Assembly: GCF_022045235.1 (NCBI RefSeq)
Contig: NW_027266319.1
Span: forward strand, 55,986,001 to 56,050,000
Source of the DNA: Haliotis cracherodii
Lineage: Eukaryota
Length of the DNA: 64,000 nt
Direction of reading: 5' to 3'
Part shown: piece after piece, positions 559-25,229 of the stretch
Layout of the letters: each line of letters opens with the position of its first letter
Position numbering within the stretch: the first letter of the stretch is position 1
Program-made: the position numbers and the translations under genes
Notes under the pieces: generated by a model
Seen by the model: only the letters and a program-made list of their open reading frames with translations
Database searches by the model: none
What the model was told of the DNA's origin: nothing

Positions 559-697
559 CCAACAACACCCTGGCTCCAATCTTTGCTATTGTGCCAACTG
601 TGCGCCATCTAACGAACCGTCGTCTCCGTCGTCCCCAAGCATCAGACTGAGGGATGGAGACTATGGCCACAAGCAGGAGGACAAGGAACAAACGCAT
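559..697 (-). CDS. Cationic peptide/EF-hand precursor, copy A1 (only coding exon 2 is in the window; exons 3-4 would lie left of position 1)
   Basis: Reverse complement reads ctgcag|aatacatcccaagATG (ATG at 697), then MRLFLVLLLVAIVSIPQSDAWGRRRRRFVRWRTVGTIAKIGARVLL+G|gtgagt. One synonymous change (GCT/GCC) versus A2. Positions 1-558 match intron 2 of the other copies. Confidence 0.85.
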
Positions 698-1201
698 CTT
701 GGGATGTATTCTGCAGTGAAAATAAATTCTTTTAGCGTGTGAGCGAGTTGGGTTTAACGCAGCTATTAACAGTTATATCACGGCGTGTCAGCTTAATATG
801 GGAGGGAAGGCCGCAGTGATGCAGGTTTTAGACGTTTACCACTTCGGCGAGACCCACGAGCACAGGTATGGTGCTTACAAACATAGAAACATAATCGGGG
901 TGAACCGGGATTCGAACCCACAATCTGGCAACTCAGCACAGCGAATTGCGGCGCCTTAGACGACTGAGCCCCCCGTGCCCCACTGAATTGTTTAAAGAAG
1001 CCGCATTCTCATGTGGGTGTGATTATTGTTGCTGATTGCCTTATGAAACGTTGATTGCTTAAGATGTAATGGATTTGACGACTGACTATCATTACAAACA
1101 ATTAAATCCTCAGTTAAATCCACATTTTGTAACCAATGCAAACTGAAATGATAAGTTACACGTAAACTAATCAGACAGATAGTGCATAAAGTATTACTCA
1201 C

Positions 1202-1258
1202 CAGAAGGACACGAGACAGGTCACAGTTGTTATGAATGTCGTGTCCCTGGTATTTATA
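1202..1258 (-). promoter_or_regulatory. TATA box and non-coding exon 1 of A1
   Basis: TATAAATA at 1258-1251; donor CTG|GTGAGT at 1202/1201. Confidence 0.7.
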
Positions 1259-3627
1259 CATTCTTTCCATTCATCAACCCGTGAAGTGAATCTGTTGCCA
1301 AAATATGGTAAGTGCCTGTTTGACAGAAACGTGCAAATGTAAATATGAAAAGAGATAAGTATCTACTTAGTCCACACCTCCTAATTGTCCTCTTTACAAG
1401 GGCTGTGTGTGAAGTGTATTTGTGTGTGATATCTATTTTTTTAAATTGTTTGAGAATATTTAAAAGAAACTTATCACACCTCCATGTCAGAATATTCAGA
1501 TCTAATTGGTTCATTTGATACTGATAAAACTCTACGTATCTCAAGTGGGAGGGAAATACATTTCTGAGTGGGAAAATATATCCCGTATACCCCGACATGA
1601 AAAAAACCAGGCTACACGTGTATTCATGAGCGAGGCCATATATATTGCACCCTGCTACGAAGCACAAAGCTGCACATTGTTTACGAGTCAAAGAACGACA
1701 CGAGAGACATCACAAGTTACCCTTAGCTCATTCGAGCAGTGGTTTTCTATCTGTTTTCAATTTGTTTTAATTTTTAATCGTTGTGGCAGTATCACACAGG
1801 GTATATGTGAATTGTGCGTCCCACGTTAGGTTTTAAACCACGAGCTGGATACTGCCACAACTTCTAATATTTGTGTACCAGAGGTGTATATGGCCATCTC
1901 TGAGAAAAATATATATTTTCCATTCAGCAAACACTGGAGGCCTTCAAAACAACTGATGCATGAAAATACCACTGGGTCACAGGTCAATTGAATTTATTGT
2001 ATAAGCGCACTTTACAGATATTGTCTCGGTGGGGCGTCCTCTGGCCACTTTGGTTCAGCTGCTGTCACATCTGTCAATCACTTTAACATACATCACAGGG
2101 GAAAGGTCAACAAGAAAGGTGACATCGATTTCGAGTAGTTCACATAAGTTTGATAAATACATGATCCCTATGTTTGAAGTAATTTGTTACTTATTGAATA
2201 TTGAGTCACGGTCAAAACATTGTTTTCTATTCCTCCTTGTAATGACAAACATGTATATACAATATCGCCATAGCTTGAAACTTAAAAAACACTTGGGACA
2301 GAGAATTCGAAATTCGTCGTAGTTCTTAAGTTCTTAAATGTGTACCCGAGTCTGTAAATGTGTACGTGAGGCTATTGTTGTGCATATAATACAGCACTGA
2401 AGTAACTGTAATGTCTTCCAATCTGCACATACACCATTTCGCAAACTATAATGTATATTTATCTATGCTGTAAAACAATATACACTCAAACCTCGCTGAA
2501 TCCTCCAGAGCGCAAAGAGAAATTCTGTTGTGGAACAAGAAATTCCGGGTTTTTTCCACGATCTACCCCAAGCATACCAAGAATATCAAATGGCCAGTCA
2601 ACAACATAATACATAAATAATACATAAACACACTTCATATACACCCCTCCCGAAGAGGACAATTAGAAAGTGTGAACTAAAGTAGATACTTATCTTAGCT
2701 AAGCTGTATGACTTGCGTCTTGTTATTCGTACAGTCAAGCTACAGAATGACACCCAATTGCTTACAACTGATATGTAAATTTGTAGATCCAAAATAAAAG
2801 AAACCCAAAAATTTGCATGTTTATAGAAAGCATCTTGTCGGGTACAAGTTTTAAACTGAAAGCAGAGTTGTATGTAAATTTGTAGATCCAAAATAAAATA
2901 AACCAAAATTTTGGTTAAAGTGGTTAACAGATGTGACAGCAGCTGAACCAAAGTGGCCAGAGGACGCCCCACCGAGACAATATCTGTAAAGGGCGCTTAT
3001 ACAATAAAGTCAATTGACCTGTGACCCAGTGGTAATTTCATGCATCAGTTGTTTTGAAGGCCTCCAGTGTTTGCTGAATGGAAAATATATATTTTTCTCA
3101 GAGATGGCCATATACACCTCTGGTACACAAATATAAGAAATTGTAGCAGTATCCAGCTCGTGGTTTAAAACCTAACGTGGGACGCACAAATTCACATATA
3201 CCCCTTGTGATACTGCCACAACGATTCGTAGCAGGGTGCAAGATATATGGCCTCGCTCATAAATACACGTGCAGCATGTTTTCTTCATGGCGGGGTATAC
3301 GGGATATATTGTCCCACTCAGAAATGTATTTCCCTCCCACTTGAGATACGTAGAATTTTATCAGTATCACATGAACCAATTAGATCTGAATATTCTGACA
3401 TGGAGGTGTGATAAGTTTCTTTTAAATATTCTCAAACAAAATTTTTAAAAATAAATATCACACACAAATACACTTCAAACAAACCCTCGTAAAGAGGACA
3501 ATTAGGAGGTGTGGACTAAGTAGATACTTATCTCTTTTCATATTTACATTTGCACGTTTCTGTCAAACAGGCACTTAACATATTTTGGCAACAGATTCAC
3601 TTCACGGGTTGATGAATGGAAAGAATG

Positions 3628-3684
3628 TATAAATACCAGGGACACGACATTCATAACAACTGTGACCTGTCTCGTGTCCTTCTG
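3628..3684 (+). promoter_or_regulatory. TATA box and non-coding exon 1 of A2
   Basis: TATAAATA at 3628-3635; consensus donor CTG|GTGAGT at 3684/3685; acceptor ttttcactgcag ends at 4190. Confidence 0.7.
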
Positions 3685-3904
3685 GTGAGTAATACTTTAT
3701 GCACTATCTGTCTGATTAGTTTACGTGTAACTTATCATTTCAGTTGGCATTGGTTACAAAATGTGGATTTAACTGAGGATTTAATTGTTTGTAATGATAG
3801 TCAGTCGTCAAATCCATTACATCTTAAGCAATCAACGTTTCATAAGGCAATCAGCAACAATAATCACACCCACATGAGAATGCGGCTTCTTTAAACAATT
3901 CAGT

Positions 3905-4165
3905 GGGGCACGGGGGGCTCAGTCGTCTAAGGCGCCGCAATTCGCTGTGCTGAGTTGCGTTCCTTGGGCACGCCAGATTGTGGGTTTGAATCCCGGTTCA
4001 CCCCGATTATGTTTCTACGTTTGTAAGCACCATACCCGTGCTCGTGGGTCTCGCCGAAGTGGTAAACGTCTAAAACCTGCATCACTGCGGCCTTCCCTCC
4101 CATATTAAGCTGACACGCCGTGATATAACTGTTAATAGCTGCGTTAAACCCAACTCGCTCACACG
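3905..4165 (+). mobile_element. tRNA-derived SINE (family 1) in intron 1 of A2; same insertion in A1, A3-A6; other copies about 10786-11048 (+), 12115-12270 (-), 37145-37360 (-), 52490-52940 (-)
   Basis: tRNA-like head with A-box-like ggctcagtcgtctaaggcgc and B-box-like gggtt(c/t)gaatccc, and a (CACT)n/(CTCA)n tail. A TSD-like taaaacaatt flanks it on both sides in A5. Absent from A7. Confidence 0.8.
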
Positions 4166-4203
4166 CTAAATCAATTTATTTTCACTGCAGAATACATCCC
4201 AAG

Positions 4204-5426
4204 ATGCGTTTGTTCCTTGTCCTCCTGCTTGTGGCCATAGTCTCCATCCCTCAGTCTGATGCCTGGGGACGACGGAGACGACGGTTCGTTAGATGGCGCA
4301 CAGTTGGCACAATAGCAAAGATTGGAGCCAGGGTGTTGTTGGGTGAGTGAAGCCAAAGAGTACTTCATTAAGTGCCTGACATACAGTATCTTCTATTTTC
4401 CCAAACTGTAATGGAGTTACGTTTTAAGTTATAGAACAATGAGCGGCTGTAGTAGGACCAAATCGGTGATGTGTCAAGTACATTAACGTCTCTCTTTTAC
4501 ATCAGGTTCAAATGAAAGTAATAAATTAAATTCCTTAAAGGCCAACTCTGCTTTCAGTGTAAAAATTGTAACCGAAAGGATGCTTTCTATAATCATGCAG
4601 TTGTGTAGACCGATGCTCATGATATAAGTCACTGGATTGTCTGTGCCACACCCAGTTATTTAAGTCCCACTGTTATATTACCTGGAATATTGCTGAACGA
4701 AAACGGACACCGAACATTGTTTTTGAATGTATGAAAATATTACATGGACTAGTCTATTCTAGAAAACGAACATAATGAAAATGTGATCATGTCATTAAGC
4801 ACTACAGAATGAGACAGAATGGTGTTCGCTATTTGTTTTGATGTAAATCTTAGTCAGCCAGCCGAAGAGCTACATACGATGACGATCTGAAATGGAAACG
4901 AGTATATGTTTTGGAATGTTACTGTAGATGCATATGAATATGTTCATTTGATATCAATACTCATAGCCTGATTAAAAGTGACCACTATCTCATATTCCTT
5001 AACCGAAAATGCATTCGTGTTCTTTCATTTTGTATCTTTCCAAACATGACTATTTTCTTTCAAGGCAAACGTAATGTGGATAACCTTGATACAAACATGG
5101 ACGGCACAATTGACCTGTCCGAAGCTGAGGCGCTAATGGACAGACGATCGGCCATGGAGCTCCTTTCGTTCTCAGATGAAAATGGTAAGAGCTTTTGCCT
5201 TCAACTTCATTGATACAAATGAAATGTTTATTACTTTTAAAATAATGTAATTATTTGTCAAATGTTTGTATTTGTTTACTCTCATGGGTAATGTGGACCC
5301 TTTTCCCGAATAAATCTGACTCCTGAACATTTATTCTGACTGACTGCAACAACCTTTCTCCATTTAGGAGACTCAAGCGTGAGTTTGGAAGAGTTCGCAA
5401 GGAGCATCAACAACTTGGAGCAGTGA
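4204..5426 (+). CDS. Secreted cationic (candidate antimicrobial) peptide precursor with acidic two-EF-hand propeptide, copy A2, 105 aa
   Basis: Coding exons 4204-4342, 5065-5184 and 5368-5426. All junctions are GT-AG, both coding introns are phase 1, and the frame is open to TGA. Hydrophobic 20-aa signal ending SDA, Arg-rich 26-mer, GKR site, EF-hand loops DTNMDGTIDLSE and DENGDSSVSLEE. TATA box, non-coding exon 1 and AATAAA are present. Confidence 0.9.
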
Positions 5427-5674
5427 GTCAAATGTAAGGTGGAGCAAATCTTACTGCAATGATCCGTTTTATACAGTAGAAACCGTCATCCGTTCAACAT
5501 AACTGTATCTGAAAATGTATGCTTCAGCAATAATTTCATGTCAAATATGCCAAGATCATATGATTTGATGTATTTCTTTTGTAGATCACTCTATTGAAGA
5601 GACACTGGCATCGCACTTTGAAGGCGATTTCGAGGATGTATTCCTGAATAGTGTTCCCACAAGTCAATAGTTTC

Positions 5675-5680
5675 AATAAA
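5675..5680 (+). terminator. Polyadenylation signal of A2 (equivalents at 9117, 13986-13991 minus, 20561, 22183-22188 minus, 29995)
   Basis: AATAAA about 250 nt after the stop, followed by a GT-rich tract (ctttgttgtgtctt); conserved in A2-A7. Confidence 0.65.
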
Positions 5681-6077
5681 TAATTATAACAATCACCTTT
5701 GTTGTGTCTTGCTCATTAAAGACGTCTTTACAGGTGTCATTTCAGACAACAGGTGATCCAATATGTAATGCTTGTATCTGATTTCTAATGTGTTCACTAC
5801 CACCATCTCGTTCAACATAATATTGATCTGCAATCGTACAACAACATAATCAGCAAAATGTATATTATATCAAGTATATCTGATATACAATATTTGTTTT
5901 GTTTGCTGTTTGTTTAATCGTACAACATTACCAGCAAAGGTAGTTCCTCAAAAGGAGATATGACATGAACATATGTATGTTCACATTGTTCTACACTGAC
6001 ATCTTTTGCAGTTTTAAAACAAATATATTCAAATAATATCATCATGAGATGAGAAAGGTATATGATGTTTAATTGTT

Positions 6078-6325
6078 TGTTTGTTGTTGAACGCCGCACT
6101 CAGCAATATTCCAGCTATATGACGGCGGTCTGTAAATAATCGAGTATGGACCAGACAATCCAGTGATTAATATCATGAAAATAATTCCACGCAATTGGTA
6201 TTCGATGACATGCATCAACCAAGTCAGCGAGCCTAACCACCCGATCCTGTTAGTCGCTTCTTACGACAAGCATGGTCGCCTTATGGTTTGCTGAAGACCT
6301 ATTCTATCCCGGATCTTCACGGCTC
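6078..6325 (-). mobile_element. SINE-like repeat (family 2); other copies about 9520-9767, 13340-13595, 20960-21205, 25612-25850, 36040-36295, 41150-41395, 43365-43600, 63335-63555
   Basis: Dispersed ~250-bp repeat with core gcttgtcgtaagaggcgactaacgggatcgggtgg, 3' end gctggaatattgctgagtgcggcgtt and a (CAAA)n tail. Confidence 0.75.
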
Positions 6326-6422
6326 GTTATGTTAAGCGAGTGAGTGAGATAGTTCAATGTTAACGTCACATCGACAATACACTATTTCAGTCATATCATG
6401 ACGACATATAGTTATACATTCC

Positions 6423-6483: not shown

Positions 6484-7069
6484 AGTGATGGACAGTATCA
6501 TAACTAGATTATCACAGTTTCAAATTAAATCAAGTTGAGAGCATGTAAAAGACAACAACAACACAATATAAAAAACGGACAAGGAACCGTAGGGACGATA
6601 CTTCTGCCACCTGCACGGTTCCCCAGCACAAATTCACATATACCCCTTGTGATACTGCCACAACGATTCGTAGCAGGGTGCAAGATATATGGCCTCGCTC
6701 ATAAATACACGTGCAGCATGTTTTCTTCATGGCGGGGTATACGGGATATATTGTCCCACTCAGAAATGTATTTCCCTCCCACTTGAGATACGTAGAATTT
6801 TATCAGTATCACATGAACCAATTAGATCTGAATATTCTGACATGGAGGTGTGATAAGTTTCTTTTAAATATTCTCAAACAAAATTTTTAAAAATAAATAT
6901 CACACACAAATACACTTCAAACAAACCCTCGTAAAGAGGACAATTAGGAGGTGTGGACTAAGTAGATACTTATCTCTTTTCATATTTACATTTGCACGTT
7001 TCTGTCAAACAGGCACTTAACATATTTTGGCAACAGATTCACTTCACGGGTTGATGAATGGAAAGAATG

Positions 7070-7126
7070 TATAAATACCAGGGACACGACATTCATAACA
7101 ACTGTGACCTGTCTCGTGTCCTTCTG
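7070..7126 (+). promoter_or_regulatory. TATA box and non-coding exon 1 of A3
   Basis: Same motifs as A2. Confidence 0.7.
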
Positions 7127-7645
7127 GTGAGTAATACTTTATGCACTATCTGTCTGATTAGTTTACGTGTAACTTATCATTTCAGTTGGCATTGGTTACA
7201 AAATGTGGATTTAACTGAGGATTTAATTGTTTGTAATGATAGTCAGTCGTCAAATCCATTACATCTTAAGCAATCAACGTTTCATAAGGCAATCAGCAAC
7301 AATAATCACACCCACATGAGAATGCGGCTTCTTTAAACAATTCAGTGGGGCACGGGGGGCTCAGTCGTCTAAGGCGCCGCAATTCGCTGTGCTGAGTTGC
7401 GTTCCTTGGGCACGCCAGATTGTGGGTTTGAATCCCGGTTCACCCCGATTATGTTTCTACGTTTGTAAGCACCATACCCGTGCTCGTGGGTCTCGCCGAA
7501 GTGGTAAACGTCTAAAACCTGCATCACTGCGGCCTTCCCTCCCATATTAAGCTGACACGCCGTGATATAACTGTTAATAGCTGCGTTAAACCCAACTCGC
7601 TCACACGCTAAATCAATTTATTTTCACTGCAGAATACATCCCAAG

Positions 7646-8868
7646 ATGCGTTTGTTCCTTGTCCTCCTGCTTGTGGCCATAGTCTCCATCCCTCAGTCTG
7701 ATGCCTGGGGACGACGGAGACGACGGTTCGTTAGATGGCGCACAGTTGGCACAATAGCAAAGATTGGAGCCAGGGTGTTGTTGGGTGAGTGAAGCCAAAG
7801 AGTACTTCATTAAGTGCCTGACATACAGTATCTTCTATTTTCCCAAACTGTAATGGAGTTACGTTTTAAGTTATAGAACAATGAGCGGCTGTAGTAGGAC
7901 CAAATCGGTGATGTGTCAAGTACATTAACGTCTCTCTTTTACATCAGGTTCAAATGAAAGTAATAAATTAAATTCCTTAAAGGCCAACTCTGCTTTCAGT
8001 GTAAAAATTGTAACCGAAAGGATGCTTTCTATAATCATGCAGTTGTGTAGACCGATGCTCATGATATAAGTCACTGGATTGTCTGTGCCACACCCAGTTA
8101 TTTAAGTCCCACTGTTATATTACCTGGAATATTGCTGAACGAAAACGGACACCGAACATTGTTTTTGAATGTATGAAAATATTACATGGACTAGTCTATT
8201 CTAGAAAACGAACATAATGAAAATGTGATCATGTCATTAAGCACTACAGAATGAGACAGAATGGTGTTCGCTATTTGTTTTGATGTAAATCTTAGTCAGC
8301 CAGCCGAAGAGCTACATACGATGACGATCTGAAATGGAAACGAGTATATGTTTTGGAATGTTACTGTAGATGCATATGAATATGTTCATTTGATATCAAT
8401 ACTCATAGCCTGATTAAAAGTGACCACTATCTCATATTCCTTAACCGAAAATGCATTCGTGTTCTTTCATTTTGTATCTTTCCAAACATGACTATTTTCT
8501 TTCAAGGCAAACGTAATGTGGATAACCTTGATACAAACATGGACGGCACAATTGACCTGTCCGAAGCTGAGGCGCTAATGGACAGACGATCGGCCATGGA
8601 GCTCCTTTCGTTCTCAGATGAAAATGGTAAGAGCTTTTGCCTTCAACTTCATTGATACAAATGAAATGTTTATTACTTTTAAAATAATGTAATTATTTGT
8701 CAAATGTTTGTATTTGTTTACTCTCATGGGTAATGTGGACCCTTTTCCCGAATAAATCTGACTCCTGAACATTTATTCTGACTGACTGCAACAACCTTTC
8801 TCCATTTAGGAGACTCAAGCGTGAGTTTGGAAGAGTTCGCAAGGAGCATCAACAACTTGGAGCAGTGA
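7646..8868 (+). CDS. Cationic peptide/EF-hand precursor, copy A3 (same as A2)
   Basis: Coding exons 7646-7784, 8507-8626 and 8810-8868, offset 3442 bp from A2. No differences seen in the exons. Confidence 0.88.
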
Positions 8869-9864
8869 GTCAAATGTAAGGTGGAGCAAATCTTACTGCA
8901 ATGATCCGTTTTATACAGTAGAAACCGTCATCCGTTCAACATAACTGTATCTGAAAATGTATGCTTCAGCAATAATTTCATGTCAAATATGCCAAGATCA
9001 TATGATTTGATGTATTTCTTTTGTAGATCACTCTATTGAAGAGACACTGGCATCGCACTTTGAAGGCGATTTCGAGGATGTATTCCTGAATAGTGTTCCC
9101 ACAAGTCAATAGTTTCAATAAATAATTATAACAATCACCTTTGTTGTGTCTTGCTCATTAAAGACGTCTTTACAGGTGTCATTTCAGACAACAGGTGATC
9201 CAATATGTAATGCTTGTATCTGATTTCTAATGTGTTCACTACCACCATCTCGTTCAACATAATATTGATCTGCAATCGTACAACAACATAATCAGCAAAA
9301 TGTATATTATATCAAGTATATCTGATATACAATATTTGTTTTGTTTGCTGTTTGTTTAATCGTACAACATTACCAGCAAAGGTAGTTCCTCAAAAGGAGA
9401 TATGACATGAACATATGTATGTTCACATTGTTCTACACTGACATCTTTTGCAGTTTTAAAACAAATATATTCAAATAATATCATCATGAGATGAGAAAGG
9501 TATATGATGTTTAATTGTTTGTTTGTTGTTGAACGCCGCACTCAGCAATATTCCAGCTATATGACGGCGGTCTGTAAATAATCGAGTATGGACCAGACAA
9601 TCCAGTGATTAATATCATGAAAATAATTCCACGCAATTGGTATTCGATGACATGCATCAACCAAGTCAGCGAGCCTAACCACCCGATCCTGTTAGTCGCT
9701 TCTTACGACAAGCATGGTCGCCTTATGGTTTGCTGAAGACCTATTCTATCCCGGATCTTCACGGCTCGTTATGTTAAGCGAGTGAGTGAGATAGTTCAAT
9801 GTTAACGTCACATCGACAATACACTATTTCAGTCATATCATGACGACATATAGTTATACATTCC

Positions 9865-11530: not shown

Positions 11531-14239
11531 TATTTGTTCATTTAGTAGTGGATATAACCAACGCAAAGTATCAATATGCATGTTTCAAAGTAGAGTAGAG
11601 GAATGCCTAATATGACGCAGGTAGTGGATGCGTATGGTGCTGGCAGGCCAATCTGAACCCACGACCAGATATTTGGGAAGAAAGCGGAAGTTGTATAAAG
11701 TAGTAGTATGAATTGTGTCATGTATTCATACGTCATACAGCTTAGCTACTGGTCTAGTGCAATGAGAAAAACTCAGTGATTCTTCGTCGGTTTGGAAATA
11801 GAGTGGTTCGTTTTGACAATGACATATTCATTGATCTGTGCATGATAATTATAGATGCATCCTTTCTGATGACATCGATCATACATTTGACCATTGTAAC
11901 ACATCATGAAATAGTAAAGTGTCAGTCAGCTACAGCTGAATATTCTTTGGTGTTTTTACAGTATTCATGAATAGACATTGTATTTAATGATGCATTACAA
12001 CCATAATTAAAAGTAATGTGATAAAAGTCAATATTGAAGAGTAACATCACCAGCATGTACGTGTGCATACCAACTCCTGTGGGGAACAGTTGGTATTATT
12101 GTAGTCCTGCCTTGCGAGTTGGGATCAACGCCGCTTTTAACAGTATTCCAGTTATATCACGGCCTGTCAGCTTAATGTGGGAGGAAAGTCTGAAGTGATG
12201 CAGGTTTCAAACGTTTACCACTTCGGTGAAACCCACGAGCACGGGTATGGTGCTGACAAACCTAGAAACACAAAGAAGAGGGACACCCGAGTAGGTGTAA
12301 ATACGCTACATGAAATTACACCAACCATCGGTTACACCGATTTTGGTTAGTCAGTCCAGATTTGGAAAGGTCAAAACCCGATGATGTCGTATTGGCCATT
12401 GACGCTAAAGTCATGAACATTTATTGAAAGGTGAGGACCCTCCATTCTGCATCCCTTGTTATCAATGTTTCAAATCATCATCTATTAAAGATCTTTTTCG
12501 TAGAATTAATTCTCGTTTAAATATTGGCTTTTAAAGGATATAGAATTATTTGAAATATTTTTGTTAATATTTTTTTAAAAACATGTTTTCAAATTCGCAA
12601 CTGAGATTGTTTGTGGTTGAATCCAAGTACAGTGATATCAGTGTCCCCCTGAGAGGGTACATACGTTCCACATGCATAATGTATATGTATTATTTGTATT
12701 TAACACCTTGAATGCTAACTCTAAATGCACACAGCCGTCTTGATGTACATATTATATTTATCTCTGTACTTTATGTATGCTCTTGTACCACCGTCGGTGG
12801 TCTATGGAGAATAAAGAATCTGATATCAGTGTCCCCCTGACAGGGTACATACGTTCCACATCTTTCAAAGTAAATTTAAACTGTCATATTTATAAGCGTA
12901 GTATATTTGTTAGTTTTAACTGGTGGATTAAACTGACTACACTTGCCAGCAGCTGAAGGGATAGTGTCAATTCTGCTGGGGAACCGTGCAGGTGGCAGAA
13001 GTATCGTCCCTACGGTTCCTTGTCCGTTTTTTATATTGTGTTGTTGTTGTCTTTTACATGCTCTCAACTTGATTTAATTTGAAACTGTGATAATCTAGTN
13101 NNNNNNNNNNNNNNNNNNNNNNNNNNNNNNNNNNNNNNNNNNNNNNNNNNNNNNNNNNNNNNNNNNNNNNNNNNNNNNNNNNNNNNNNNNNNNNNNNNNN
13201 NNNNNNNNNNNNNNNNNNNNNNNNNNNNNNNNNNNNNNNNNNNNNNNNNNNNNNNNNNNNNTCGTCATGATATGACTGAAATAGTGTATTGTCGATGTGA
13301 CGTTAACATTGAACTATCTCACTCACTCGCTTAACATAACGAGCCGTGAAGATCCGGGATAGAATAGGTCTTCAGCAAACCATAAGGCGACCATGCTTGT
13401 CGTAAGAAGCGACTAACGGGATCGGGTGGTTAGACTCGCCGACTTGGTTGATGCATGTCATCGAATACCAATTGCGTGGAATTATTTTCATGATATTAAT
13501 CACTGGATTGTCTGGTCCATACTCGATTATTTACAGACCGCCGTCATATAGCTGGACTATTGCTGAGTGCACCGTTCAACAACAAACAAACAATTAAACA
13601 TCATATACCTTTCTCATCTCATGATGATATTATTTGAATATATTTTTTTTAAAACTGCAAAAGATGTCAGTGTAGAACAATGTGAACATACATATGCTCA
13701 TGTCATATCTCCTTTTGAGGAACTACCTTTGCTGGTAATGTTGTACGATTAAACAAACAACAAACAAAACAAATATTGTATATCAGATATACTTGATATA
13801 ATATACATTTTGCTGATTATGTTGTTGTACGATTGCAGATCAATATTATGTTGAACGAGTTGGTGGTAGTGAACACATTAGAAATCAGATACAAGCATTA
13901 CATATTGGATCACCTGTTGTCTGAAATGACACCTGTAAAGACGTTTTTAATGAGCAAGACACAACAAAGGTGATTGTTATAATTATTTATTGAAACTATT
14001 GACTTGTGGGAACACTATTCAGGAATACATCCTCGAAATCGCCTTCAAAGTGCGATGCCAGTGTCTCTTCAATAGAGTGATCTACAAAAGAAATACATCA
14101 AATCATATGATCTTGGCATATTTGACATGAAATTATTGCTGAAGCATACATTTTCAGATACAGTTATGTTGAACGGATGACGGTTTCTACTGTATAAAAC
14201 GGATCATTGCAGTAAGATTTGCTCCACCTTACATTTGAC

Positions 14240-15455
14240 TCACTGCTCCAAGTTGTTGATGCTCCTTGCGAACTCTTCCAAACTCACGCTTGAGTCTCCT
14301 AAATGGAGAAAGGTTGTTGCAGTCAGTCAAAATAAATGTTCAGGAGTCAGATTTATTCGGGAAAAGGGTCCACATTACCCATGAGCGTCAAAACTAATAC
14401 AAACACTTGACAAATAATTACATTATTTTAAACATTTCATTTGTATCAATGAAGTTGAAGGCAAAAGCTCTTACCATTTTCATCTGAGAACGAAAGGAGC
14501 TCCATGGCCGATCGTCTGTCCATTAGCGCCTCAGCTTCGGACAGGTCAATTGTGCCGTCCATGTTTGTATCAAGGTTATCCACATTACGTTTGCCTTGAA
14601 AGAAAATAGTCATGTTTGGAAAGATACAAAATGAAAGAACACGAATGCATTTTCGGTTAAGGAATATGAGATAGTGGTCACTTTTAATCAGGCTATGAGT
14701 ATTGATATCAAATGAACATATTCATATACATCTACAGTAACATTCCAAAACATATACTCGTTTCCATTTCAAATCGTCATCGTATGTAGCTCTTCGGCTG
14801 GCTGACTAAGATTTACATCAAAACAAATAGCGAACACCATTCTGTCTCATTCTGTAGTGCTTAATGACATGATCACATTTTCATTATGTTCGTTTTCTAG
14901 AATAGACTAGTCCATGTAATATTTTCATACATTCAAAAACAATGTTCGGTGTCCGTTTTCGTTCAGCAATATTCCAGGTAATATAACAGTGGGACTTAAA
15001 TAACTGGGTGTGGCACAGACAATCCAGTGACTTATATCATGAGCATCGGTCTACACAACTGCATGATTATAGAAAGCATCCTGTCGGTTACAATTTTTAC
15101 ACTGAAAGCAGAGTTGGCCTTTTAGTCATTTAATTTATTACTTTCATTTGAACCTGATGTAAAAGAGAGACAATAATGTACTTGACACATCACCGATTTG
15201 GTCCTACTACAGCCGCTCATTGTTCTATAACTTAAACCGTAACTCCATTACAGTTTGGGAAAATAGAAGATACTGTAGGTCAGGCACTTAATGAAGTACT
15301 CTTTGGCTTCACTCACCCAACAACACCCTGGCTCCAATCTTTGCTATTGTGCCAACTGTGCGCCATCTAACGAACCGTCGTCTCCGTCGTCCCCAGGCAT
15401 CAGACTGAGGGATGGAGACTATGGCCACAAGCAGGAGGACAAGGAACAAACGCAT
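14240..15455 (-). CDS. Cationic peptide/EF-hand precursor, copy A4
   Basis: Minus-strand coding exons 15455-15317, 14594-14475 and 14298-14240. Splice sites intact; same 105-aa protein as A2. Confidence 0.9.
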
Positions 15456-15974
15456 CTTGGGATGTATTCTGCAGTGAAAATAAATTGTTTTAGCGTGTGA
15501 GCGAGTTGGGTTTAACGCAGCTATTAACAGTTATATCACGGCGTGTCAGCTTAATATGGGAGGGAAGGCCGCAGTGATGCAGGTTTTAGACGTTTACCAC
15601 TTCGGCGAGACCCACGAGCACGGGTATGGTGCTTACAAACGTAGAAACATAATCGGGGTGAACCGGGATTCAAACCCACAATCTGGCGTGCCCAAGGAAC
15701 GCAACTCAGCACAGCGAATTGCGGTGCCTTAGACGACTGAGCCCCCCGTGCCCCACTGAATTGTTTTAAGAAGCTGCATTCTCATGTGGGTGTGATTATT
15801 GTTGCTGATTGCCTTATGAAACGTTGATTGCTTAAGATGTAATGGATTTGACGACTGACTATCATTACAAACAATTAAATCCTCAGTTAAATCCACATTT
15901 TGTAACCAATGAAAACTGAAATGATAAGTTACACGTAAACTAATCAGACAGATAGTGCATAAAGTATTACTCAC

Positions 15975-16031
15975 CAGAAGGACACGAGACAGGTCACAGT
16001 TGTTATGAATGTCGTGTCCCTGGTATTTATA
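15975..16031 (-). promoter_or_regulatory. TATA box and non-coding exon 1 of A4
   Basis: Same motifs as A2 on the minus strand. Confidence 0.7.
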
Positions 16032-18521
16032 CATTCTTTCCATTCATCAACCCGTGAAGTGAATCTGTTGCCAAAATATGTTAAGTGCCTGTTTGACAGA
16101 AACGTGCAAATGTAAATATGAAAAGAGATAAGTATCTACTTAGTCCACACCTCCTAATTGTCCTCTTTACAAGGGCTGTGTGTGAAGTGTATTTATGTGT
16201 GATATCTATTTTTTTAAATTGTTTGAGAATATTTAAAAGAAACTTATCACACCTCCATGTCAGAATATTCAGATCTAATTGGTTCATTTGATACTGATAA
16301 AACTCTACGTATCTCAAGTGGGAGGGAAATACATTTCTGAGTGGGAAAATATATCCCGTATACCCCGACATGAAAAAAACCAGGCTACACGTGTATTCAT
16401 GAGCGAGGCCATATATATTGCACCCTGCTACGAAGCACAAAGCTGCACATTGTTTACGAGTCAAAGAACGACACGAGAGACATCACAAGTTACCCTTAGC
16501 TCATTCGAGCAGTGGTTTTCGATCTGTTTTCAATTTGTTTTAATTTTGAATCGTTGTGGCAGTATCACACGGGGTATATGTGAATTTGCGTGTCCCACGT
16601 TAGGTTTTAAACCACGAGCTGGATACTGCCACAACTTCTAATATTTGTGTACCAGAGGTGTATATGGCCATCTCTGAGAAAAACATATTTTCCATTCAGC
16701 AAACACTGGAGGCCTTCAAAACAACTGATGCATGAAAATACCACTGGGTCACAGGTCAATTGAATTTATTGTATAAGCGCACTTTACAGATATTGTCTCG
16801 GTGGGGCGTCCTCTGGCCACTTTGGTTCAGCTGCTGTCACATCTGTCAATCACTTTAACATACATCACAGGGGAAAGGTCAACAAGAAAGGTGACATCGA
16901 TTTCGAGTAGTTCACATAAGTTTGATAAATACATGATCCCTATGTTTGAAGTAATTTGTTACTTATTGAATATTGAGTCACGGTCAAAACATTGTTTTCT
17001 ATTCTTCCTTGTAATGACAAACATGTATATACCATATCGCCAAAGCTTGAACCTTAAAAAACACTTGGGACAGAGAATTCGAAATTCGTCGTAGTTCTTA
17101 AGTTCTTAAATGTGTACCCGAGTCTGTAAATGTGTACGTGAGGCTATTGTTGTGCATATAATACAGCACTTAAGTAACTGTAATGTCTTCAAATCTGCAC
17201 ATACACCATTTCGCAAACTACAATGTATATTTATCTATGCTGTAAAACAATATACACTCAAACCTCGCTGAATCCTCCAGAGCGCAAAGAGAAATTCTGT
17301 CTCTGTTGTGGAACAAGAAATTCCGGTTTTTTTCCACGATCTACCCCAAGCATACCAAGAATATCAAATGGCCAGTCAACAACATAATACATAAATAATA
17401 CATAAACACACTTCATATACACCCCTCCCGAAGAGGACAATTAGAAAGTGTGAACTAAAGTAGATACTTATCTTAGCTAAGCTGTATGACTTGCGTCTTG
17501 TTATTCGTACAGTCAAGCTACAGAATGACACCCAATTGCTTACAACTGATATGTAATTTTGTAGATCCAAAATAAAAGAAACCCAAACATTTGCATGTTT
17601 ATAGAAAGCATCTTGTCGGGTACAAGTTTTAAATTGAAAGCAGAGTTGTATGTAAATTTGTAGATCCAAAATAAAATAAACCAAAATTTTGGTTAAAGTG
17701 GTTAACAGATGTGACAGCAGCTGAACCAAAGTGGCCAGAGGACGCCCCACCGACACAATATCTGTAAAGTGCGCTTATACAATAAAGTCAATTGACCTGT
17801 GACCCAGTGGTAATTTCATGCATCAGTTGTTTTGAAGGCCTCCAGTGTTTGCTGAATGGAAAATATATGTTTTTCTCAGAGATGGCCATATACACCTCTG
17901 GAACACAAATATTAGAAATTGTAGCAGTATCCAGCTCGTGGTTTAAAACCTAACGTGGGACGCACAAATTCACATATACCCCGTGTGATACTGCCACAAC
18001 GATTCAAAATTAAAACAAATTGAAAACAGATCGAAAACCACTGCTCGAATGAGCTAAGGGTAACTTGTGATGTCTCTCGTGTCGTTCTTTGACTCGTAAA
18101 CAATGTGCAGCTTTGTGCTTCGTAGCAGGGTGCAATATATATGGCCTCGCTCATGAATACACGTGCAGCATGTTTTCTTCATGTCGGGGTATACGGGATA
18201 TATTGTCCCACTCAGAAATGTATTTCCCTCCCACTTGAGATACGTAGAGTTTTATCAGTATCACATGAACCAATTAGATCTGAATATTCTGACATGGAGG
18301 TGTGATAAGTTTCTTTTAAATATTCTCAAACAAAAAATTTAAAAATAAATATCACACACAAATACACTTCACACAAACCCTCGTAAAGAGGACAATTAGG
18401 AGGTGTGGACTAAGTAGATACTTATCTCTTTTCATATTTACATTTGCACGTTTCTGTCAAACAGGCACTTAACATATTTTGGCAACAGATTCACTTCACG
18501 GGTTGATGAATGGAAAGAATG

Positions 18522-18578
18522 TATAAATACCAGGGACACGACATTCATAACAACTGTGACCTGTCTCGTGTCCTTCTG
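18522..18578 (+). promoter_or_regulatory. TATA box and non-coding exon 1 of A5
   Basis: Same motifs as A2. Confidence 0.7.
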
Positions 18579-19096
18579 GTGAGTAATACTTTATGCACTA
18601 TCTGTCTGATTAGTTTACGTGTAACTTATCATTTCAGTTGGCATTGGTTACAAAATGTGGATTTAACTGAGGATTAATTGTTTGTAATGATAGTCAGTCG
18701 TCAAATCCATTACATCTTAAGCAATCAACGTTTCATAAGGCAATCAGCAACAATAATCACACCCACATGAGAATGCAGCTTCTTAAAACAATTCAGTGGG
18801 GCACGGGGGGCTCAGTCGTCTAAGGCGCCGCAATTCGCTGTGCTGAGTTGCGTTCCTTGGGCACGCCAGATTGTGGGTTTGAATCCCGGTTCACCCCGAT
18901 TATGTTTCTACGTTTGTAAGCACCATACCCGTGCTCGTGGGTCTCGCCGAAGTGGTAAACGTCTAAAACCTGCATCACTGCGGCCTTCCCTCCCATATTA
19001 AGCTGACACGCCGTGATATAACTGTTAATAGCTGCGTTAAACCCAACTCGCTCACACGCTAAAACAATTTATTTTCACTGCAGAATACATCCCAAG

Positions 19097-20312
19097 ATGC
19101 GTTTGTTCCTTGTCCTCCTGCTTGTGGCCATAGTCTCCATCCCTCAGTCTGATGCCTGGGGACGACGGAGACGACGGTTCGTTAGATGGCGCACAGTTGG
19201 CACAATAGCAAAGATTGGAGCCAGGGTGTTGTTGGGTGAGTGAAGCCAAAGAGTACTTCATTAAGTGCCTGACATACAGTATCTTCTATTTTCCCAAACT
19301 GTAATGGAGTTACGGTTTAAGTTATAGAACAATGAGCGGCTGTAGTAGGACCAAATCGGTGATGTGTCAAGTACATTAACGTCTCTCTTTTACATCAGGT
19401 TCAAATGAAAGTAATAAATTAAATGACTAAAAGGCCAACTCTGCTTTCAGTGTAAAAATTGTAACTGACAGGATGCTTTCTATAATCATGCAGTTGTGTA
19501 GACCGATGCTCATGATATAAGTCACTGGATTGTCTGTGCCACACCCAGTTATTTAAGTCCCACTGTTATATTACCTGGAATATTGCTGAACAAAAACGGA
19601 CACCGAACATTGTTTTTGAATGTATGAAAATATTACATGGACTAGTCTATTCTAGAAAACGAACATAATGAAAATGTGATCATGTCATTAAGCACTACAG
19701 AATGAGACAGAATGGTATTCGCTATTTGTTTTGATGTAAATCTTAGTCAGCCAGCCGAAGAGCTACATACGATGACGATTTGAAATGGAAACGAGTATAT
19801 GTTTTGGAATGTTACTGTAGATGTATATGAATATGTTCATTTGATATCAATACTCATAGCCTGATTAAAAGTGACCACTATCTCATATTCCTTAACCGAA
19901 AATGCATTCGTGTTCTTTCATTTTGTATCTTTCCAAACATGACTATTTTCTTTCAAGGCAAACGTAATGTGGATAACCTTGATACAAACATGGACGGCAC
20001 AATTGACCTGTCCGAAGCTGAGACGCTAATGGACAGACGATCGGCCATGGAGCTCCTTTCGTTCTCAGATGAAAATGGTAAGAGCTTTTGCCTTCAACTT
20101 CATTGATACAAATGAAATGTTTAAAATAATGTAATTATTTGTCAAGTGTTTGTATTAGTTTTGACGCTCATGGGTAATGTGGACCCTTTTCCCGAATAAA
20201 TCTGACTCCTGAACATTTATTCTGACTGACTGCAACAACCTTTCTCCATTTAGGAGACTCAAGCGTGAGTTTGGAAGAGTTCGCAAGGAGCATCAACAAC
20301 TTGGAGCAGTGA
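19097..20312 (+). CDS. Cationic peptide/EF-hand precursor, copy A5
   Basis: Coding exons 19097-19235, 19958-20077 and 20254-20312. One substitution in the propeptide (EAEALM to EAETLM); mature peptide unchanged. Confidence 0.9.
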
Positions 20313-21290
20313 GTCAAATGTAAGGTGGAGCAAATCTTACTGCAATGATCCGTTTTATACAGTAGAAACCGTCATCCGTTCAACACAACTGTATCTGAAA
20401 ATGTATGCTTCAGCAATAATTTCATGTCAAATATGCCAAGATCATATGATTTGATGTATTTCTTTTGTAGATCACTCTATTGAAGAGACACTGGCATCGC
20501 ACTTTGAAGGCAATTTCGAGGATGTATTCCTGAATAGTGTTCCCACAAGTCAATAGTTTCAATAAATAATTATAACAATCACCTTTGTTGTGTCTTGCTC
20601 ATTAAAGACGTCTTTACAGGTGTCATTTCAGACAACAGGTGATCCAATATGTAATGCTTGTATCTGTTTTCTAATGTGTTCACTGCCACCATCTCGTTCA
20701 ACATAATATTGATTTTCAATCGTACAACAACATAATCAGCAAAATGTATATTATGTCAAGTATATCTGATATACAATATTTGTTTTGTTTGTTGTTTGTT
20801 TAATCGTGCAACAATACCAGCAAAGGTAGTTCCTCAAAAGGAGATATGACATGAGCATATGTATGTTCACATTGTTCTACACTGACATCTTTTGCAGTTA
20901 TAAAAAAAATATATTCAAATAATATCATCATGAGATGAGAATGGTATATGATGTTTAATTGTTTGTTTGTTGTTGAACGGTGCACTCAGCAATATTCCAG
21001 CTATATGACGGCGGTCTGTAAATAATCGAGTATGGACCAGACAATCCAGTGATTGATATCATGAAAATAATTCCACCCAATTGGTATTCGATGACATGCA
21101 TCAACCAAGTCAGCGAGCCTAACCACCCGATCCCGTTTGAATACGACAAGCATGGTCGCCTTATGGTTTGCTGAAAACCTATTCTATCCCGGATCTTCAC
21201 GGCTCGTTATGTTAAGCGAGTGAGTGAGATAGTTCAATGTTAACGTCACATCGACAATACACTATTTCAGTCATATCAGTTATACATTCC

Positions 21291-21379
<89 letters not shown>

Positions 21380-22436
21380 AGTGATGCACAGTATCATAAC
21401 TAGATTATCACAGTTTCAAATTAAATCAAGTTGAGAGCATGTAAAAGACAACAACAACAACACAATATAAAAAACGGACAAGGAACCGTAGGGACGATAC
21501 TTCTGCCACCTGCACGGTTCCCCAGCAGAATTGACACTATCCCTTCAGCTGCTGGCAAGTGTAGTCAGTTTAATCCACCAGTTAAAACTAACAAATATAC
21601 TACGCTTAAAAATGTGACAGTTTAAATTTACTTTGAAAGATGTGGAACGTATGTACCCCGTCAGCCGTCTTGATGTACATATCATATTTATCTCTGTACT
21701 TTATGTATGCTCTTGTACCACCGTCGGTGGTCTATGGAGAATAAAGAATCTGATATCAGTGTCACCCTGACAGGGTACATACGTCCCACATCTTTCAAAG
21801 TAAATTTAAACTATCACATTTATAAGCGTAGTTTATTTGTTAAACGGTTAACTGCAAAAGATGTCAGTGTAGAACAATGTGAACATACATATGCTCATGT
21901 CATAACTCCTTTTGAGGAACTACCTTTGCTGGTATTGTTGTACGATTAAACAAACAACAAACAAAACAAATATTGTATATCAGATATACTTGATATAATA
22001 TACATTTTGCTGATTATGTTGTTGTACGATTGCAGATCAATATTATGTTGAACGAGATGGTGGCAGTGAACACATTGGAAAACAGATACAAGCATTACGT
22101 ATTGGATCACCTGTTGTCTGAAATGACACCTGTAAAGACGTCTTTAATGAGCAAGACACAACAAAGGTGATTGTTATAATTATTTATTGAAACTATTGAC
22201 TTGTGGGAACACTATTCAGGAATACATCCTCGAAATTGCCTTCAAAGTGCGATGCCAGTGTCTCTTCAATAGAGTGATCTACAAAAGAAATACATCAAAT
22301 CATATGATCTTGGCATATTTGACATGAAATTATTGCTGAAGCATACATTTTCAGATACAGTTATGTTGAACGGATGACGGTTTCTACTGTATAAAACGGA
22401 TCATTGCAGTAAGATTTGCTCCACCTTACATTTGAC

Positions 22437-23659
22437 TCACTGCTCCAAGTTGTTGATGCTCCTTGCGAACTCTTCCAAACTCACGCTTGAGTCTCCTAAA
22501 TGGAGAAAGGTTGTTGCAGTCAGTCAGAATAAATGTTCAGGAGTCAGATTTATTCGGGAAAAGGGTCCACATTACCCATGAGAGTAAAACAATACAAACA
22601 TTTGACAAATAATTACATTATTTTAAAAGTAATAAACATTTCATTTGTATCAATGAAGTTGAAGGCAAAAGCTCTTACCATTTTCATCTGAGAACGAAAG
22701 GAGCTCCATGGCCGATCGTCTGTCCATTAGCGTCTCAGCTTCGGACAGGTCAATTGTGCCGTCCATGTTTGTATCAAGGTTATCCACATTACGTTTGCCT
22801 TGAAAGAAAATAGTCATGTTTGGAAAGATACAAAATGAAAGAACACGAATGCATTTTCGGTTAAGGAATATGAGATAGTGGTCACTTTTAATCAGGCTAT
22901 GAGTATTGATATCAAATGAACATATTCATATACATCTACAGTAACATTCCAAAACATATACTCGTTTCCATTTCAAATCGTCATCGTATATAGCTCTTCG
23001 GCTGGCTGACTAAGATTTACATCAAAACAAATAGCGAACACCATTCTGTCTCATCCTGTAGTGCTTAATGACATGATCACATTTTCATTATGTTCGTTTT
23101 CTAGAATAGACTAGTCCATGTAATATTTTCATACATTCAAAAACAATGTTCGGTGTCCGTTTTCGTTCAGCAATATTCCAGGTAATATAACAGTGGGACT
23201 TAAATAACTGGGTGTGGCACAGACAATCCAGTGACTTATATCATGAGCATCGGTCTACACAACTGCATAATTATAGAAAGCATCCTTTCGGTTACAATTT
23301 TTACACTGAAAGCAGAGTTGGCCTTTTAGTCATTTAATTTATTACTTTCATTTGAACCTGATGTAAAAGAGAGACGTTAATGTACTTGATACATCACCGA
23401 TTTGGTCCTACTACAGCTGCTCATTGTTCTATAACTTAAACCGTAACTCCATTACAGTTTGGGAAAATAGAAGATACTGTATGTGAGGCACTTAATGAAG
23501 TACTCTTTGGCTTCACTCACCCAACAACACCCTGGCTCCAATCTTTGCTATTGTGCCAACTGTGCGCCATCTAACGAACCGTCGTCTCCGTCGTCCCCAG
23601 GCATCAGACTGAGGGATGGAGACTATGGCCACAAGCAGGAGGACAAGGAACAAACGCAT
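22437..23659 (-). CDS. Cationic peptide/EF-hand precursor, copy A6
   Basis: Minus-strand coding exons 23659-23521, 22798-22679 and 22495-22437. Carries the EAETLM variant; splice sites intact. Confidence 0.9.
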
Positions 23660-24177
23660 CTTGGGATGTATTCTGCAGTGAAAATAAATTGTTTTAGCGT
23701 GTGAGCGAGTTGGGTTTAACGCAGCTATTAACAGTTATATCACGGCGTGTCAGCTCAATATGGGAGGGAAGGCCGCAGTGATGCAGGTTTTAGACGTTTA
23801 CCACTTCGGCGAGACCCACGAGCACGGGTATGGTGCTTACAAACGTAGAAACATAATCGGGGTGAACCGGGATTCAAACCCACAATCTGGCGTGCCCAAG
23901 GAACGCAACTCAGCACAGCGAATTGCGGCGCCTTAGACGACTGAGCCCCCCGTGCCCCACTGAATTGTTTTAAGAAGCCGTATTCTCATGTGGTGTGATT
24001 ATTGTTGCTGATTGCCTCATGAAACGTTGATTGCTTAAGATGTAATGGGTTTGACGACTGACTATCATTACAAACAATTAAATCCTCAGTTAAATCCACA
24101 TTTTGTAACCAATGAAAACTGAAATGATAAGTTACACGTAAACTAATCAGACAGATAGTGCATAAAGTATTACTCAC

Positions 24178-24234
24178 CAGAAGGACACGAGACAGGTCAC
24201 AGTTGTTATGAATGTCGTGTCCCTGGTATTTATA
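24178..24234 (-). promoter_or_regulatory. TATA box and non-coding exon 1 of A6
   Basis: TATATAAATA variant plus GTGAGT donor on the minus strand. Confidence 0.7.
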
Positions 24235-25229
24235 TATTCTTTCCATTCATCAACCCGTGAAGTGAATCTGTTGCCAAAATATGTTAAGTGCCTGTTTGAC
24301 AGAAACGTGCAAATGTAAATATGAAAAGAGATAAGTATCTACTTAGTCCACACCTCCTTATTGTTGGGTTGGGTATGAAGTGTGTTTGTGTGTGATATTG
24401 ATTGAATGGCCATTTGATATTCTTGGGGTGATGGGGGTAATCAGTGAAAAAGGATTTGAAGAAATTACAGTTACGGAAGTGATGCATTATATGCACAACA
24501 ATAGCCTCGGGTACATATTTGAAAGACTAACTTACGAGCTGCGACGAATTACGGATTCTGTGTCCCCAGCGTACCTGTTTTGTAGGTTTCAAGCCATGGC
24601 GATATGGTATACATATGTTTGTGAATACAAGTAGGAATAGAAAAATACTTCGATCGTGATTCATAGGTTCTCAGAGAATGAACTCTACAATATTCAATGA
24701 GAAAGAAATTAGTTTAAACAAAGAGATCATGCATTTTTCACACTTAAGTAAACTACCCCAATTTGATATCACCTTTCTTGTTGACCTTTCCTGTGTGATA
24801 TATGTTAAAGTGATTGACAGATGTGACAGCAGCTGAACCAAAGTGGCCACAGGACGCCCCACCGAGACAATATCTGTAAAGTGCGCTTATACATTAAATT
24901 CAATTGACCCGTGACCCAGTGGTATTTTCATAATGCGTCAGTTGTTTTGATGGCTTCCAGTGTTTGCTGAATGGAAAATATATTTTTCTCAGAGATGGCC
25001 ATATGCACCACTGGTTCACAAATATTAGAAGTTGTAGCAATATACGGCACCTGATATTAAACCTTACGTGGAACGTATAAAATCACATATACCACGTGTG
25101 ATAATGTCACAACGATTATATCTTACTTCCCCGTTTCAATCGGCCATTGTAAAAGAATTGAAAACAGATAGAAAACAGCTGTTCGAATGAGCTGAGGTAT
25201 ACATTGATAACATACAACACAATATGAAA

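Follow-up and report, generated by a model that had tools for sequence, protein, structure and literature searches.

Introduction

What does a gene deliver when a single reading frame joins an Arg-rich peptide to an acidic EF-hand tail? This question is raised by a 64-kb stretch of the genome of the black abalone, Haliotis cracherodii (C56:55,986,001-56,050,000 of the assembly; hereafter the window), in which a first-pass annotation of the bare sequence had noticed a spliced gene at 4204-5426. The gene was proposed to encode a signal peptide, a cationic peptide, a Gly-Lys-Arg processing site and an acidic tail with two EF-hand loops, and to belong to a hidden family of host-defence peptide genes. 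Gastropods have so far yielded few gene-encoded antimicrobial peptides. For abalone, the reviews consulted name chiefly molluscidin, macins and pieces of larger proteins. Here we describe the gene, its transcripts and its relatives, which together look like an undescribed family of defence peptides.

Results

Gene structure and encoded precursor

The coding sequence of the gene (copy 1) lies on the forward strand in three exons at 4204-4342, 5065-5184 and 5368-5426. GT/AG was read directly at every border, and both coding joins split a Gly codon in phase 1. The exons translate into a signal peptide followed by WGRRRRRFVRWRTVGTIAKIGARVLL (4204-4341), then KRNVDNLDTNMDGTIDLSEAEALMDRRSAMELLSFSDEN (5067-5183), and finally DSSVSLEEFARSINNLEQ and the stop codon (5370-5426), exactly as had been claimed for the three exons joined in frame. 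The joined model is identical, letter for letter, to a 105-residue H. cracherodii protein (XP_071082059.1 to XP_071082061.1; here P0093) that emerged from the search with the family profile, and coding exon 1 corresponds to its residues 1-46. The splice model has thus been annotated independently, as an "uncharacterized protein" in NCBI RefSeq, and the gene is not hidden, as it had been called. We used the window exons as queries one by one, while the full-length analyses ran on P0093.

The composition is also as first described. The 26-residue peptide contains 8 Arg, 1 Lys and 2 Trp and no acidic residue, giving a charge of +9, and the 56-residue tail contains 14 Asp/Glu versus 3 Arg, giving a charge of -11. 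There is no Cys in the whole precursor.

Upstream of the coding region, a TATA box (TATAAATA, 3630-3637, read directly) precedes a predicted short non-coding exon 1, the donor of which would be at 3684, followed by GT. Intron 1 (3685-4190) interrupts the 5' untranslated region (UTR) and holds a highly repeated interspersed element at about 3850-4200, as seen from contig depth and the comparison of copies. Coding exon 1 (4191-4342), established by translation and RNA contigs, starts with the ATG at 4204 and comprises the signal peptide of 20 residues, the Arg/Trp-rich peptide of 26 residues and the first base of the Gly codon. Coding exon 2 (5065-5184; 120 nt, phase 1-1), supported by translation and RNA depth, contributes the rest of the Gly codon, Lys-Arg, EF loop 1 (DTNMDGTIDLSE), a linker and the start of loop 2. 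Coding exon 3 (5368-5433; 66 nt), supported by translation and an RNA joint, completes loop 2 and adds the exit helix, the TGA at 5424-5426 and 7 nt of 3'UTR. A further intron (5434-5584) therefore begins only 7 nt past the stop codon, as the RNA joint 5433/5585 indicates. The last exon (5585-5700) consists of 3'UTR with AATAAA at 5675-5680, read directly, and has RNA depth over 5576-5700 in two of the sequencing runs described below (X2 and X3). There is no open reading frame of at least 180 codons anywhere in the 64-kb window, and neither ARAGORN nor Rfam detected an RNA gene.

Transcription and splicing

We compared contigs from the sequencing runs X1, X2 and X3, which we guessed to be RNA and which come from one species each, with the DNA run X15 as a control. 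X15 holds this stretch and has the same organism code as X1. The 5184/5368 joint with GT..AG was present in X1, X2 and X3, that is, in three species, and absent from X15. Similarly, the 5433/5585 joint, also with GT..AG, was found in three contigs of X2 and again in X3, and was missing from the DNA run. For the 4342/5065 junction, exon-1 ends in X3 abut 5065 directly, as loose ends, and X2 contains a joint in which the end of exon 1 has diverged. Translated in frame, this end gives ...VGRAALIGARLL-Gly-Lys-Arg and is a species variant of the cationic peptide. X2 RNA contigs also span 4195-4298 of coding exon 1.

X1 covers the exons at low depth (8.5), whereas the depth in X2 (25,000-150,000) and in X3 is very high. 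Over 3632-3703 there was no contig depth. Of the three junctions singled out for checking by the first-pass annotation, two are therefore present in RNA contigs; the 5'UTR exon and its 3684/4191 junction stay predicted, based on the conserved TATA box and donor. The block at 3620-3684 is 98.5-100% identical in six copies of the gene and 88% identical in an older copy, and GT always follows it. Together, the contigs and copies show a transcribed, spliced gene with a conserved reading frame.

A gene family across Haliotis

A phmmer search with the 39-residue product of exon 2 against 1.84 billion representatives, with the top 8000 candidates scored, returned three full-coverage relatives, all from Haliotis, the remaining matches being bacterial proteins made of repeated EF-hands. 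Searches with one relative and with a family profile brought up about 30 proteins from H. cracherodii, H. rufescens, H. asinina and H. rubra. Two of them are called "calcium-binding protein 5-like", all others "uncharacterized protein". Another 12 proteins, H. rufescens orthologues among them, come from the 90% cluster of P0093. Within the reach of the 39-residue query and the 8000 scored candidates, the relatives thus total about 45, every one of them from Haliotis. A homology search with exon 1 alone, subject to a length window, returned nothing, and a protein atlas yielded low-scoring leads to EF-hand clusters of molluscs and viruses but none for the peptide half. Seven identical translations of exon 1 in the window together with some 45 homologues are far beyond chance.

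The relatives fall into at least four subfamilies: proteins of 105 residues, of about 142 residues, of about 118 residues, and the type of P0094. They have a common order of parts, namely a signal peptide, a head of Trp/Phe and poly-Arg, an amphipathic or hydrophobic stretch, Gly-Lys-Arg, two EF loops and an acidic end. The precursor design that had been proposed for copy 1 is both transcribed, as shown by the RNA joints, and conserved among the relatives. The invariant columns of the alignment are Gly-Lys-Arg and the ligands of the EF loops. Mean pairwise identity is 69% in the signal peptide, 35% in the peptide, 100% in Gly-Lys-Arg and 64% in the EF domain. Gly-Lys-Arg occurs in 21 of 21 sequences from subfamilies that are 45-60% identical to P0093.

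A gene of the long subfamily, that of about 142 residues (L002), has four coding exons. Its third exon has 66 nt and ends in phase 1, as does the exon at 5368-5433 of copy 1, and the frame continues beyond it. The 3'UTR intron of the short genes therefore occupies the position of the old last coding intron. This position suggests that the TGA at 5424 shortened the tail and that an early stop codon gave rise to the short subfamily, leaving the intron in the UTR. The older copy in the window carries the same TGA stop as copy 1. In BLASTP, the open frame downstream of this stop (5587-5667) gave no alignment with the tail of the long subfamily.

We found no description of this Haliotis family in the literature searched, from which subscription journals were mostly out of reach, so that a prior description is possible. 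Likewise, nothing was found in the literature on the RefSeq LOC/XP identifiers or on "calcium-binding protein 5-like" with Haliotis. The novelty that had been suspected for the combination of parts stands in so far as no paper on the family was found, and is softened by the related designs of mytimycin (PMC8004829), myticalin (PMC5577615) and pleurin/HCS2 (PMC8398477).

Features and evolution of the cationic peptide

The best helical hydrophobic moment over 14 residues is 0.71, at residues 12-25 of the peptide, and AlphaFold2 places a helix at residues 26-46 of the precursor with low confidence. Across the family, the peptide carries a charge of +7 to +18 and the tail one of -9 to -22. The negative charge of the tail is at least as large as the positive charge of the peptide in every member, in line with the earlier idea of acidic masking. 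The subfamily with the short tail also has the shortest and least charged peptides.

Between subfamilies, dN is highest in the peptide (0.37-0.68), as against 0.12-0.18 in the signal peptide and 0.04-0.20 in the EF exon. The clearest contrast comes from two sister species: type-A proteins of H. cracherodii and H. rufescens differ by 5-6 replacements, all of them within residues 36-44, and by none in the 79 residues outside the peptide, a clustering with Fisher p values of 1.4e-4 to 6.8e-4. The stretch reads GTIAKIGARV in H. cracherodii versus GRLALTGA[K/R]L in H. rufescens. Judged from these comparisons, the peptide is the fast-evolving part of the precursor, with its hydrophobic half diversifying between species, a pattern typical of defence or toxin peptides.

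The EF-hand tail

The claim of two EF-hand loops holds fully for the first. Loop 1 is a canonical EF-hand loop with oxygen ligands at positions 1, 3, 5, 9 and 12, Gly at position 6 and a hydrophobic residue at position 8. Loop 2 (DENGDSSVSLEE) agrees at all of these positions except position 6, where Ser replaces Gly. The family profile matches calmodulin (E 4e-6), SCaMC and calcineurin B, within a range of 4e-6 to 1e-4. AlphaFold2 folds the tail into a helix-loop-helix pair (pLDDT 71-80) with short strands in both loops, and Foldseek retrieved EF-hand proteins only (troponin C, parvalbumin and calmodulin), all weakly, with a best E of 0.01 or worse.

Gene copies in the window and beyond

The window contains seven copies of coding exon 1 that all translate identically. 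Six belong to complete, intact genes, and the seventh to a copy that the window start truncates. DNA identity between the copies is 97-100%, except for the older copy at about 83%. The cut copy (559-1266, reverse strand) retains the promoter and 5' exon block at 1202-1266 and coding exon 1 at 559-697. Copy 2 (7062-9132, forward strand) is 100% identical to copy 1 in DNA, with exons at 7646-7784, 8507-8626 and 8810-8875 and a last exon from 9027. Copy 3 (13976-16039, reverse strand) is intact, with exons at 15317-15455, 14475-14594 and 14233-14298 and its last exon at 13976-14081. Two further intact copies carry the variant Ala69Thr: copy 4 (18514-20576, forward strand; exons 19097-19235, 19958-20077 and 20254-20319) and copy 5 (22173-24242, reverse strand; exons 23521-23659, 22679-22798 and 22430-22495). 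The older copy (28289-30010, forward strand; exons 28540-28678, 29363-29482 and 29687-29752) is intact as well, and its intron 1 is free of the repeat. Runs of N interrupt the window at 13100-13261 and at three places near 61.8-62.6 kb.

The adjacent gene units at 3184-6399 and 6626-9841 are 100% identical over 3,216 bp, which reflects either a very recent duplication or a collapse or expansion in the assembly. In comparison with copy 1, the older copy is 99.3% identical in exon 1, 94.2% in exon 2, 97.0% in exon 3, 77.4% in the last exon and about 83% in the introns. Its exon 1 (28540-28678 versus 4204-4342) differs by one synonymous change, whereas identity drops to 77-88% over its promoter block, its introns and its last exon. 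The identity of 99.3% in exon 1 against flanks of 77-88% suggests local gene conversion of the peptide exon, which agrees with a separate remark of the first-pass annotation that this exon had been homogenised by conversion.

Beyond the window, at least 22 exon-1 copies of the window type lie at C56 55.90-56.06 Mb (about 155 kb) in both orientations. Such an array of near-identical copies was presumably amplified for high output. Clusters of further subfamilies occur on two chromosomes, at C56 0.81-0.84, 2.34-2.37 and 53.86-53.90 Mb and on C23. The cluster at 53.86-53.90 Mb (L003, C56:53900200-53903400) encodes WRRRIRWRRVARIALRVAPIVL ahead of Gly-Lys-Arg; this type, rather than that of the window, is nearest to P0091 and P0005 of H. 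rubra and H. asinina.

Interspersed repeats lie in intron 1 (about 3850-4200) and intron 2 (about 4570-4700) of copy 1 and recur at the corresponding positions of the other young copies. In all four runs, contigs pile up over these repeats to thousands of times the depth of the flanks; over 3848-4207, this marks the intron-1 element as a genome-wide repeat. The older copy at 28.3 kb does not carry the intron-1 element, nor do some DNA contigs, which indicates that it was inserted after that duplication. ARAGORN found no tRNA in the intron-1 repeat, and Rfam had no match to it.

Gene B, a distant paralogue

A distant paralogue, gene B, lies on the reverse strand at 34306-36753. It encodes a related signal peptide followed by WRRRRLRRIIRRIVRH... 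and has a phase-1 donor at 36645. Its exons 2 (35359-35291) and 3 (34349-34306) are predictions, and together they would encode an acidic tail without EF-hands. Gene B is tied to the family by a locus at about C56 0.72 Mb (L001, C56:720400-722600), where a B-like exon 1 with an in-frame TGA lies upstream of an EF-hand exon. There is a near-identical second copy of gene B at C56:56064405-56064533, 42 kb downstream. Within the second intron of the gene B model, a tandem array of units of about 30-40 nt ("ttgaaatttcaagatact..." in the reverse-strand reading) occupies 34650-35010.

Discussion

Proposed maturation and function

The precursor probably, if by no means certainly, gives rise to a secreted, amidated, membrane-active defence peptide that is kept neutral by its acidic EF-hand propiece. 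Signal peptidase would cut after Ser-Asp-Ala20 and a convertase of the furin or prohormone convertase (PC) type after Lys48-Arg49. A carboxypeptidase would then trim Lys-Arg, and peptidylglycine amidating monooxygenase would turn Gly47 into a C-terminal amide on Leu46. The predicted product is a Cys-free peptide of 26 residues with a charge of +9 (+10 with the amide) and a predicted monoisotopic mass of 3177.93 Da, in which an N-terminal Trp/poly-Arg head is followed by an amphipathic, Gly/Ala-rich hydrophobic tail. It would act as a membrane-active antimicrobial effector of host defence. The propiece of 56 residues (-11), presumably a compact pair of calcium-binding EF-hands, would shield the peptide in the calcium-rich secretory pathway until cleavage. 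This scheme follows the established course of prohormone maturation, which has also been invoked for the myticalins of mussels (PMC5577615).

The conservation of the processing site speaks for this scheme. Since Gly-Lys-Arg is invariant across subfamilies of 45-60% identity, while the peptide directly before it averages 35% identity, the site is likely used for cleavage and amidation. Conservation of the Gly makes sense only where the upstream peptide is what becomes amidated. In gene B, a signal peptide and an Arg-rich peptide are retained with a different, predicted acidic tail, which points to the peptide as the conserved product. The balance of charges, the Cys-free composition with 8 Arg and 2 Trp, the helical hydrophobic moment, the rapid divergence of the peptide and the precedents of myticalins (gene plan) and mytimycin (EF-hand propiece) speak for the defence peptide as well. 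Genes with P_proprotein (convertase) and Cu2_monooxygen domains are present in the H. cracherodii genome, the latter domain family including enzymes of the DBH type.

Several observations weigh against a defence peptide with an EF-hand propiece. P0093 alone scores 22.8 bits with Pfam EF-hand_1, below the cut-off of 25.4; the relatives P0094 (29.0) and P0037 (25.9) pass this cut-off, and 14 of 15 members have E < 0.01. An annotated H. cracherodii type-A paralogue (P0116, alignment A3) has Val-Lys-Arg in place of Gly-Lys-Arg; it could still be cleaved, without amidation, and may be a decaying copy. The rapid change of the peptide would suit a weakly constrained spacer equally well, and with dS saturated and the alignment gapped in the peptide, dN/dS > 1 is not claimable. 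A complex prediction of the tail (residues 50-105) and 2 Ca with the peptide (residues 20-49) scored 0.22 against a mark of 0.34, which counts neither for nor against binding of the peptide by the tail. Finally, EF-hand regions are also found in secreted molluscan proteins of other kinds: the secreted mantle proteins PFMG1 and abalone Hdh-SMP5 are tied to shell formation, and the gastropod neuropeptide precursor pleurin/HCS2 (PMC8398477) has an EF-hand tail.

Alternative products

The functional product might instead be the secreted EF-hand domain, serving shell formation or calcium handling in the mantle, with the Arg-rich segment as a removable pro-region or a module that binds mineral or matrix. 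The EF exon is indeed the better conserved part (64% versus 35% identity, dN of only 0.04-0.20), and large gene arrays also fit bulk secreted matrix proteins. However, an invariant Gly before Lys-Arg would be needless if the tail alone mattered, gene B retains the peptide in a precursor predicted to have no EF-hands, and the short subfamily appears to have lost one third of the tail via a stop codon. Moreover, the text of an in-depth paper on the H. laevigata shell proteome mentions no EF-hand protein, and the layout of Hdh-SMP5 differs, with a signal peptide of 16 residues and its first EF loop at residue 36, leaving no room for an Arg-rich peptide. We therefore regard a product of this kind as unlikely. 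Hdh-SMP5 was also considered as a published member of the family and rejected because of its different architecture.

Another fast-evolving, secreted cationic role, such as that of a sperm-egg factor, a component of mucus or adhesive, or a toxin against predators or fouling, would likewise account for replacements between sister species that are concentrated in one short stretch. The contrast in depth between X1 (8.5) and X2 (25,000-150,000) suggests strong specificity for a tissue or stage, which would suit such a role too. Yet nothing specifically indicates gonad or mucus, and the succession of signal, cationic and anionic parts is best documented for antimicrobial peptides, so that we give these roles a low probability.

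Even less convincing is a precursor for a neuropeptide or hormone as in pleurin/HCS2, in which one or more amidated peptides acting on a receptor, and not on membranes, would be accompanied by an EF-hand region. Gly-Lys-Arg is the classical amidation signal of neuropeptides, but the precursors here hold a single peptide of 24-44 residues with a charge of +7 to +18, and the C-termini share no motif such as PRX-amide. Nor would one expect a receptor ligand to replace 6 out of 9 neighbouring residues from one sister species to the other, and at least 22 near-identical copies plus several subfamilies (40 or more genes) are unusual for neuropeptide genes.

Returning to the defence peptide, a more specific version of the masking may be envisaged by analogy with a calmodulin lobe. 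The EF-hand propiece would then act as a calcium-dependent clamp that grips the basic amphipathic peptide in the way calmodulin grips basic amphipathic helices, holding a membrane-lytic peptide inert in the secretory pathway until cleavage frees it; we hold this idea to be rather improbable. Sea water and haemolymph are rich in calcium, and for this reason a true calcium switch outside the cell seems unlikely, whereas a calmodulin-like clamp inside the secretory pathway is possible.

If the peptides are active, they would represent a large, fast-evolving and highly transcribed family of linear amidated peptides and a new component of abalone immunity. They would also be a source of short, Cys-free peptide templates from a genus in which the black abalone is endangered and relatives are farmed. 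Furthermore, after the mytimycins of mussels, theirs would be the second, independent case in which a defence peptide has an EF-hand domain for its propiece, and such a second case would make the role of these propieces experimentally testable. The clamp, if true, would be a new principle of autoinhibition for defence peptides in a Haliotis-wide family of 40 or more genes.

Comparison with known systems

The tail resembles the EF pairs of the calmodulin type in the canonical loop ligands at positions 1, 3, 5, 9 and 12 and in the profile matches and, weakly, in the fold matches. It differs in that the two loops are connected by a linker with 5-8 residues fewer, that loop 1 has almost no entering helix and starts five residues after Lys-Arg, that position 6 of loop 2 is Ser, and that the abalone domain is secreted. 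PFMG1 of Pinctada and Hdh-SMP5 of Haliotis discus hannai (PMC10741955) are small, secreted, acidic molluscan proteins with EF loops as well. However, Hdh-SMP5 has three loops starting at residue 36, without an Arg-rich peptide or Gly-Lys-Arg, and it was not among the matches of the family searches.

Pleurin/HCS2 (Bogdanov et al., 1998, cited in PMC8398477) is likewise a secreted gastropod precursor with one or more amidated peptides followed by an EF-hand region. The pleurin peptides are short, occur several per precursor and end in PRX-amide, whereas the abalone genes form a large array and encode one long polycationic peptide ending in ...ARVLL. No PRX C-terminus precedes Gly-Lys-Arg in any of the aligned family members.

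The mytimycins of mussels share the EF-hand propiece: their anionic C-terminal extension, which follows a dibasic site, contains an EF-hand domain (PMC8004829). It is regarded as an acquisition from an EF-hand gene that already existed (PMC8004829), and the symmetric phase 1-1 of the abalone EF exon would fit exon shuffling. The mature mytimycin, in contrast, has 54 residues with 12 Cys, and no amidation Gly has been described for it, while the abalone peptide is linear and has no Cys.

Closest in overall design are the myticalins and modiocalins of mussels (PMC5577615, PMC12294457), which combine a signal peptide, a linear, Cys-free, Arg-rich peptide, a Gly with a basic site and an anionic C-terminal extension, and which form multigene clusters with a hypervariable peptide. 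The gene plans are alike, too: the first exon is non-coding (predicted in abalone), an intron lies shortly upstream of the ATG, signal and whole peptide share one exon, and a phase-1 intron follows. In myticalins, this intron lies a few residues into the tail, whereas in abalone it splits the Gly codon of Gly-Lys-Arg, and the myticalin tails are described as free of domains, in contrast to the EF-hand pair spread over two further exons in abalone. Myticalins have been reported from Mytilida only (PMC5577615), and we liken the abalone precursor to them by design. In this sense, the abalone genes join two themes known from mussels, the gene plan and linear Arg-rich peptide of the myticalins and the EF-hand propiece of the mytimycins.

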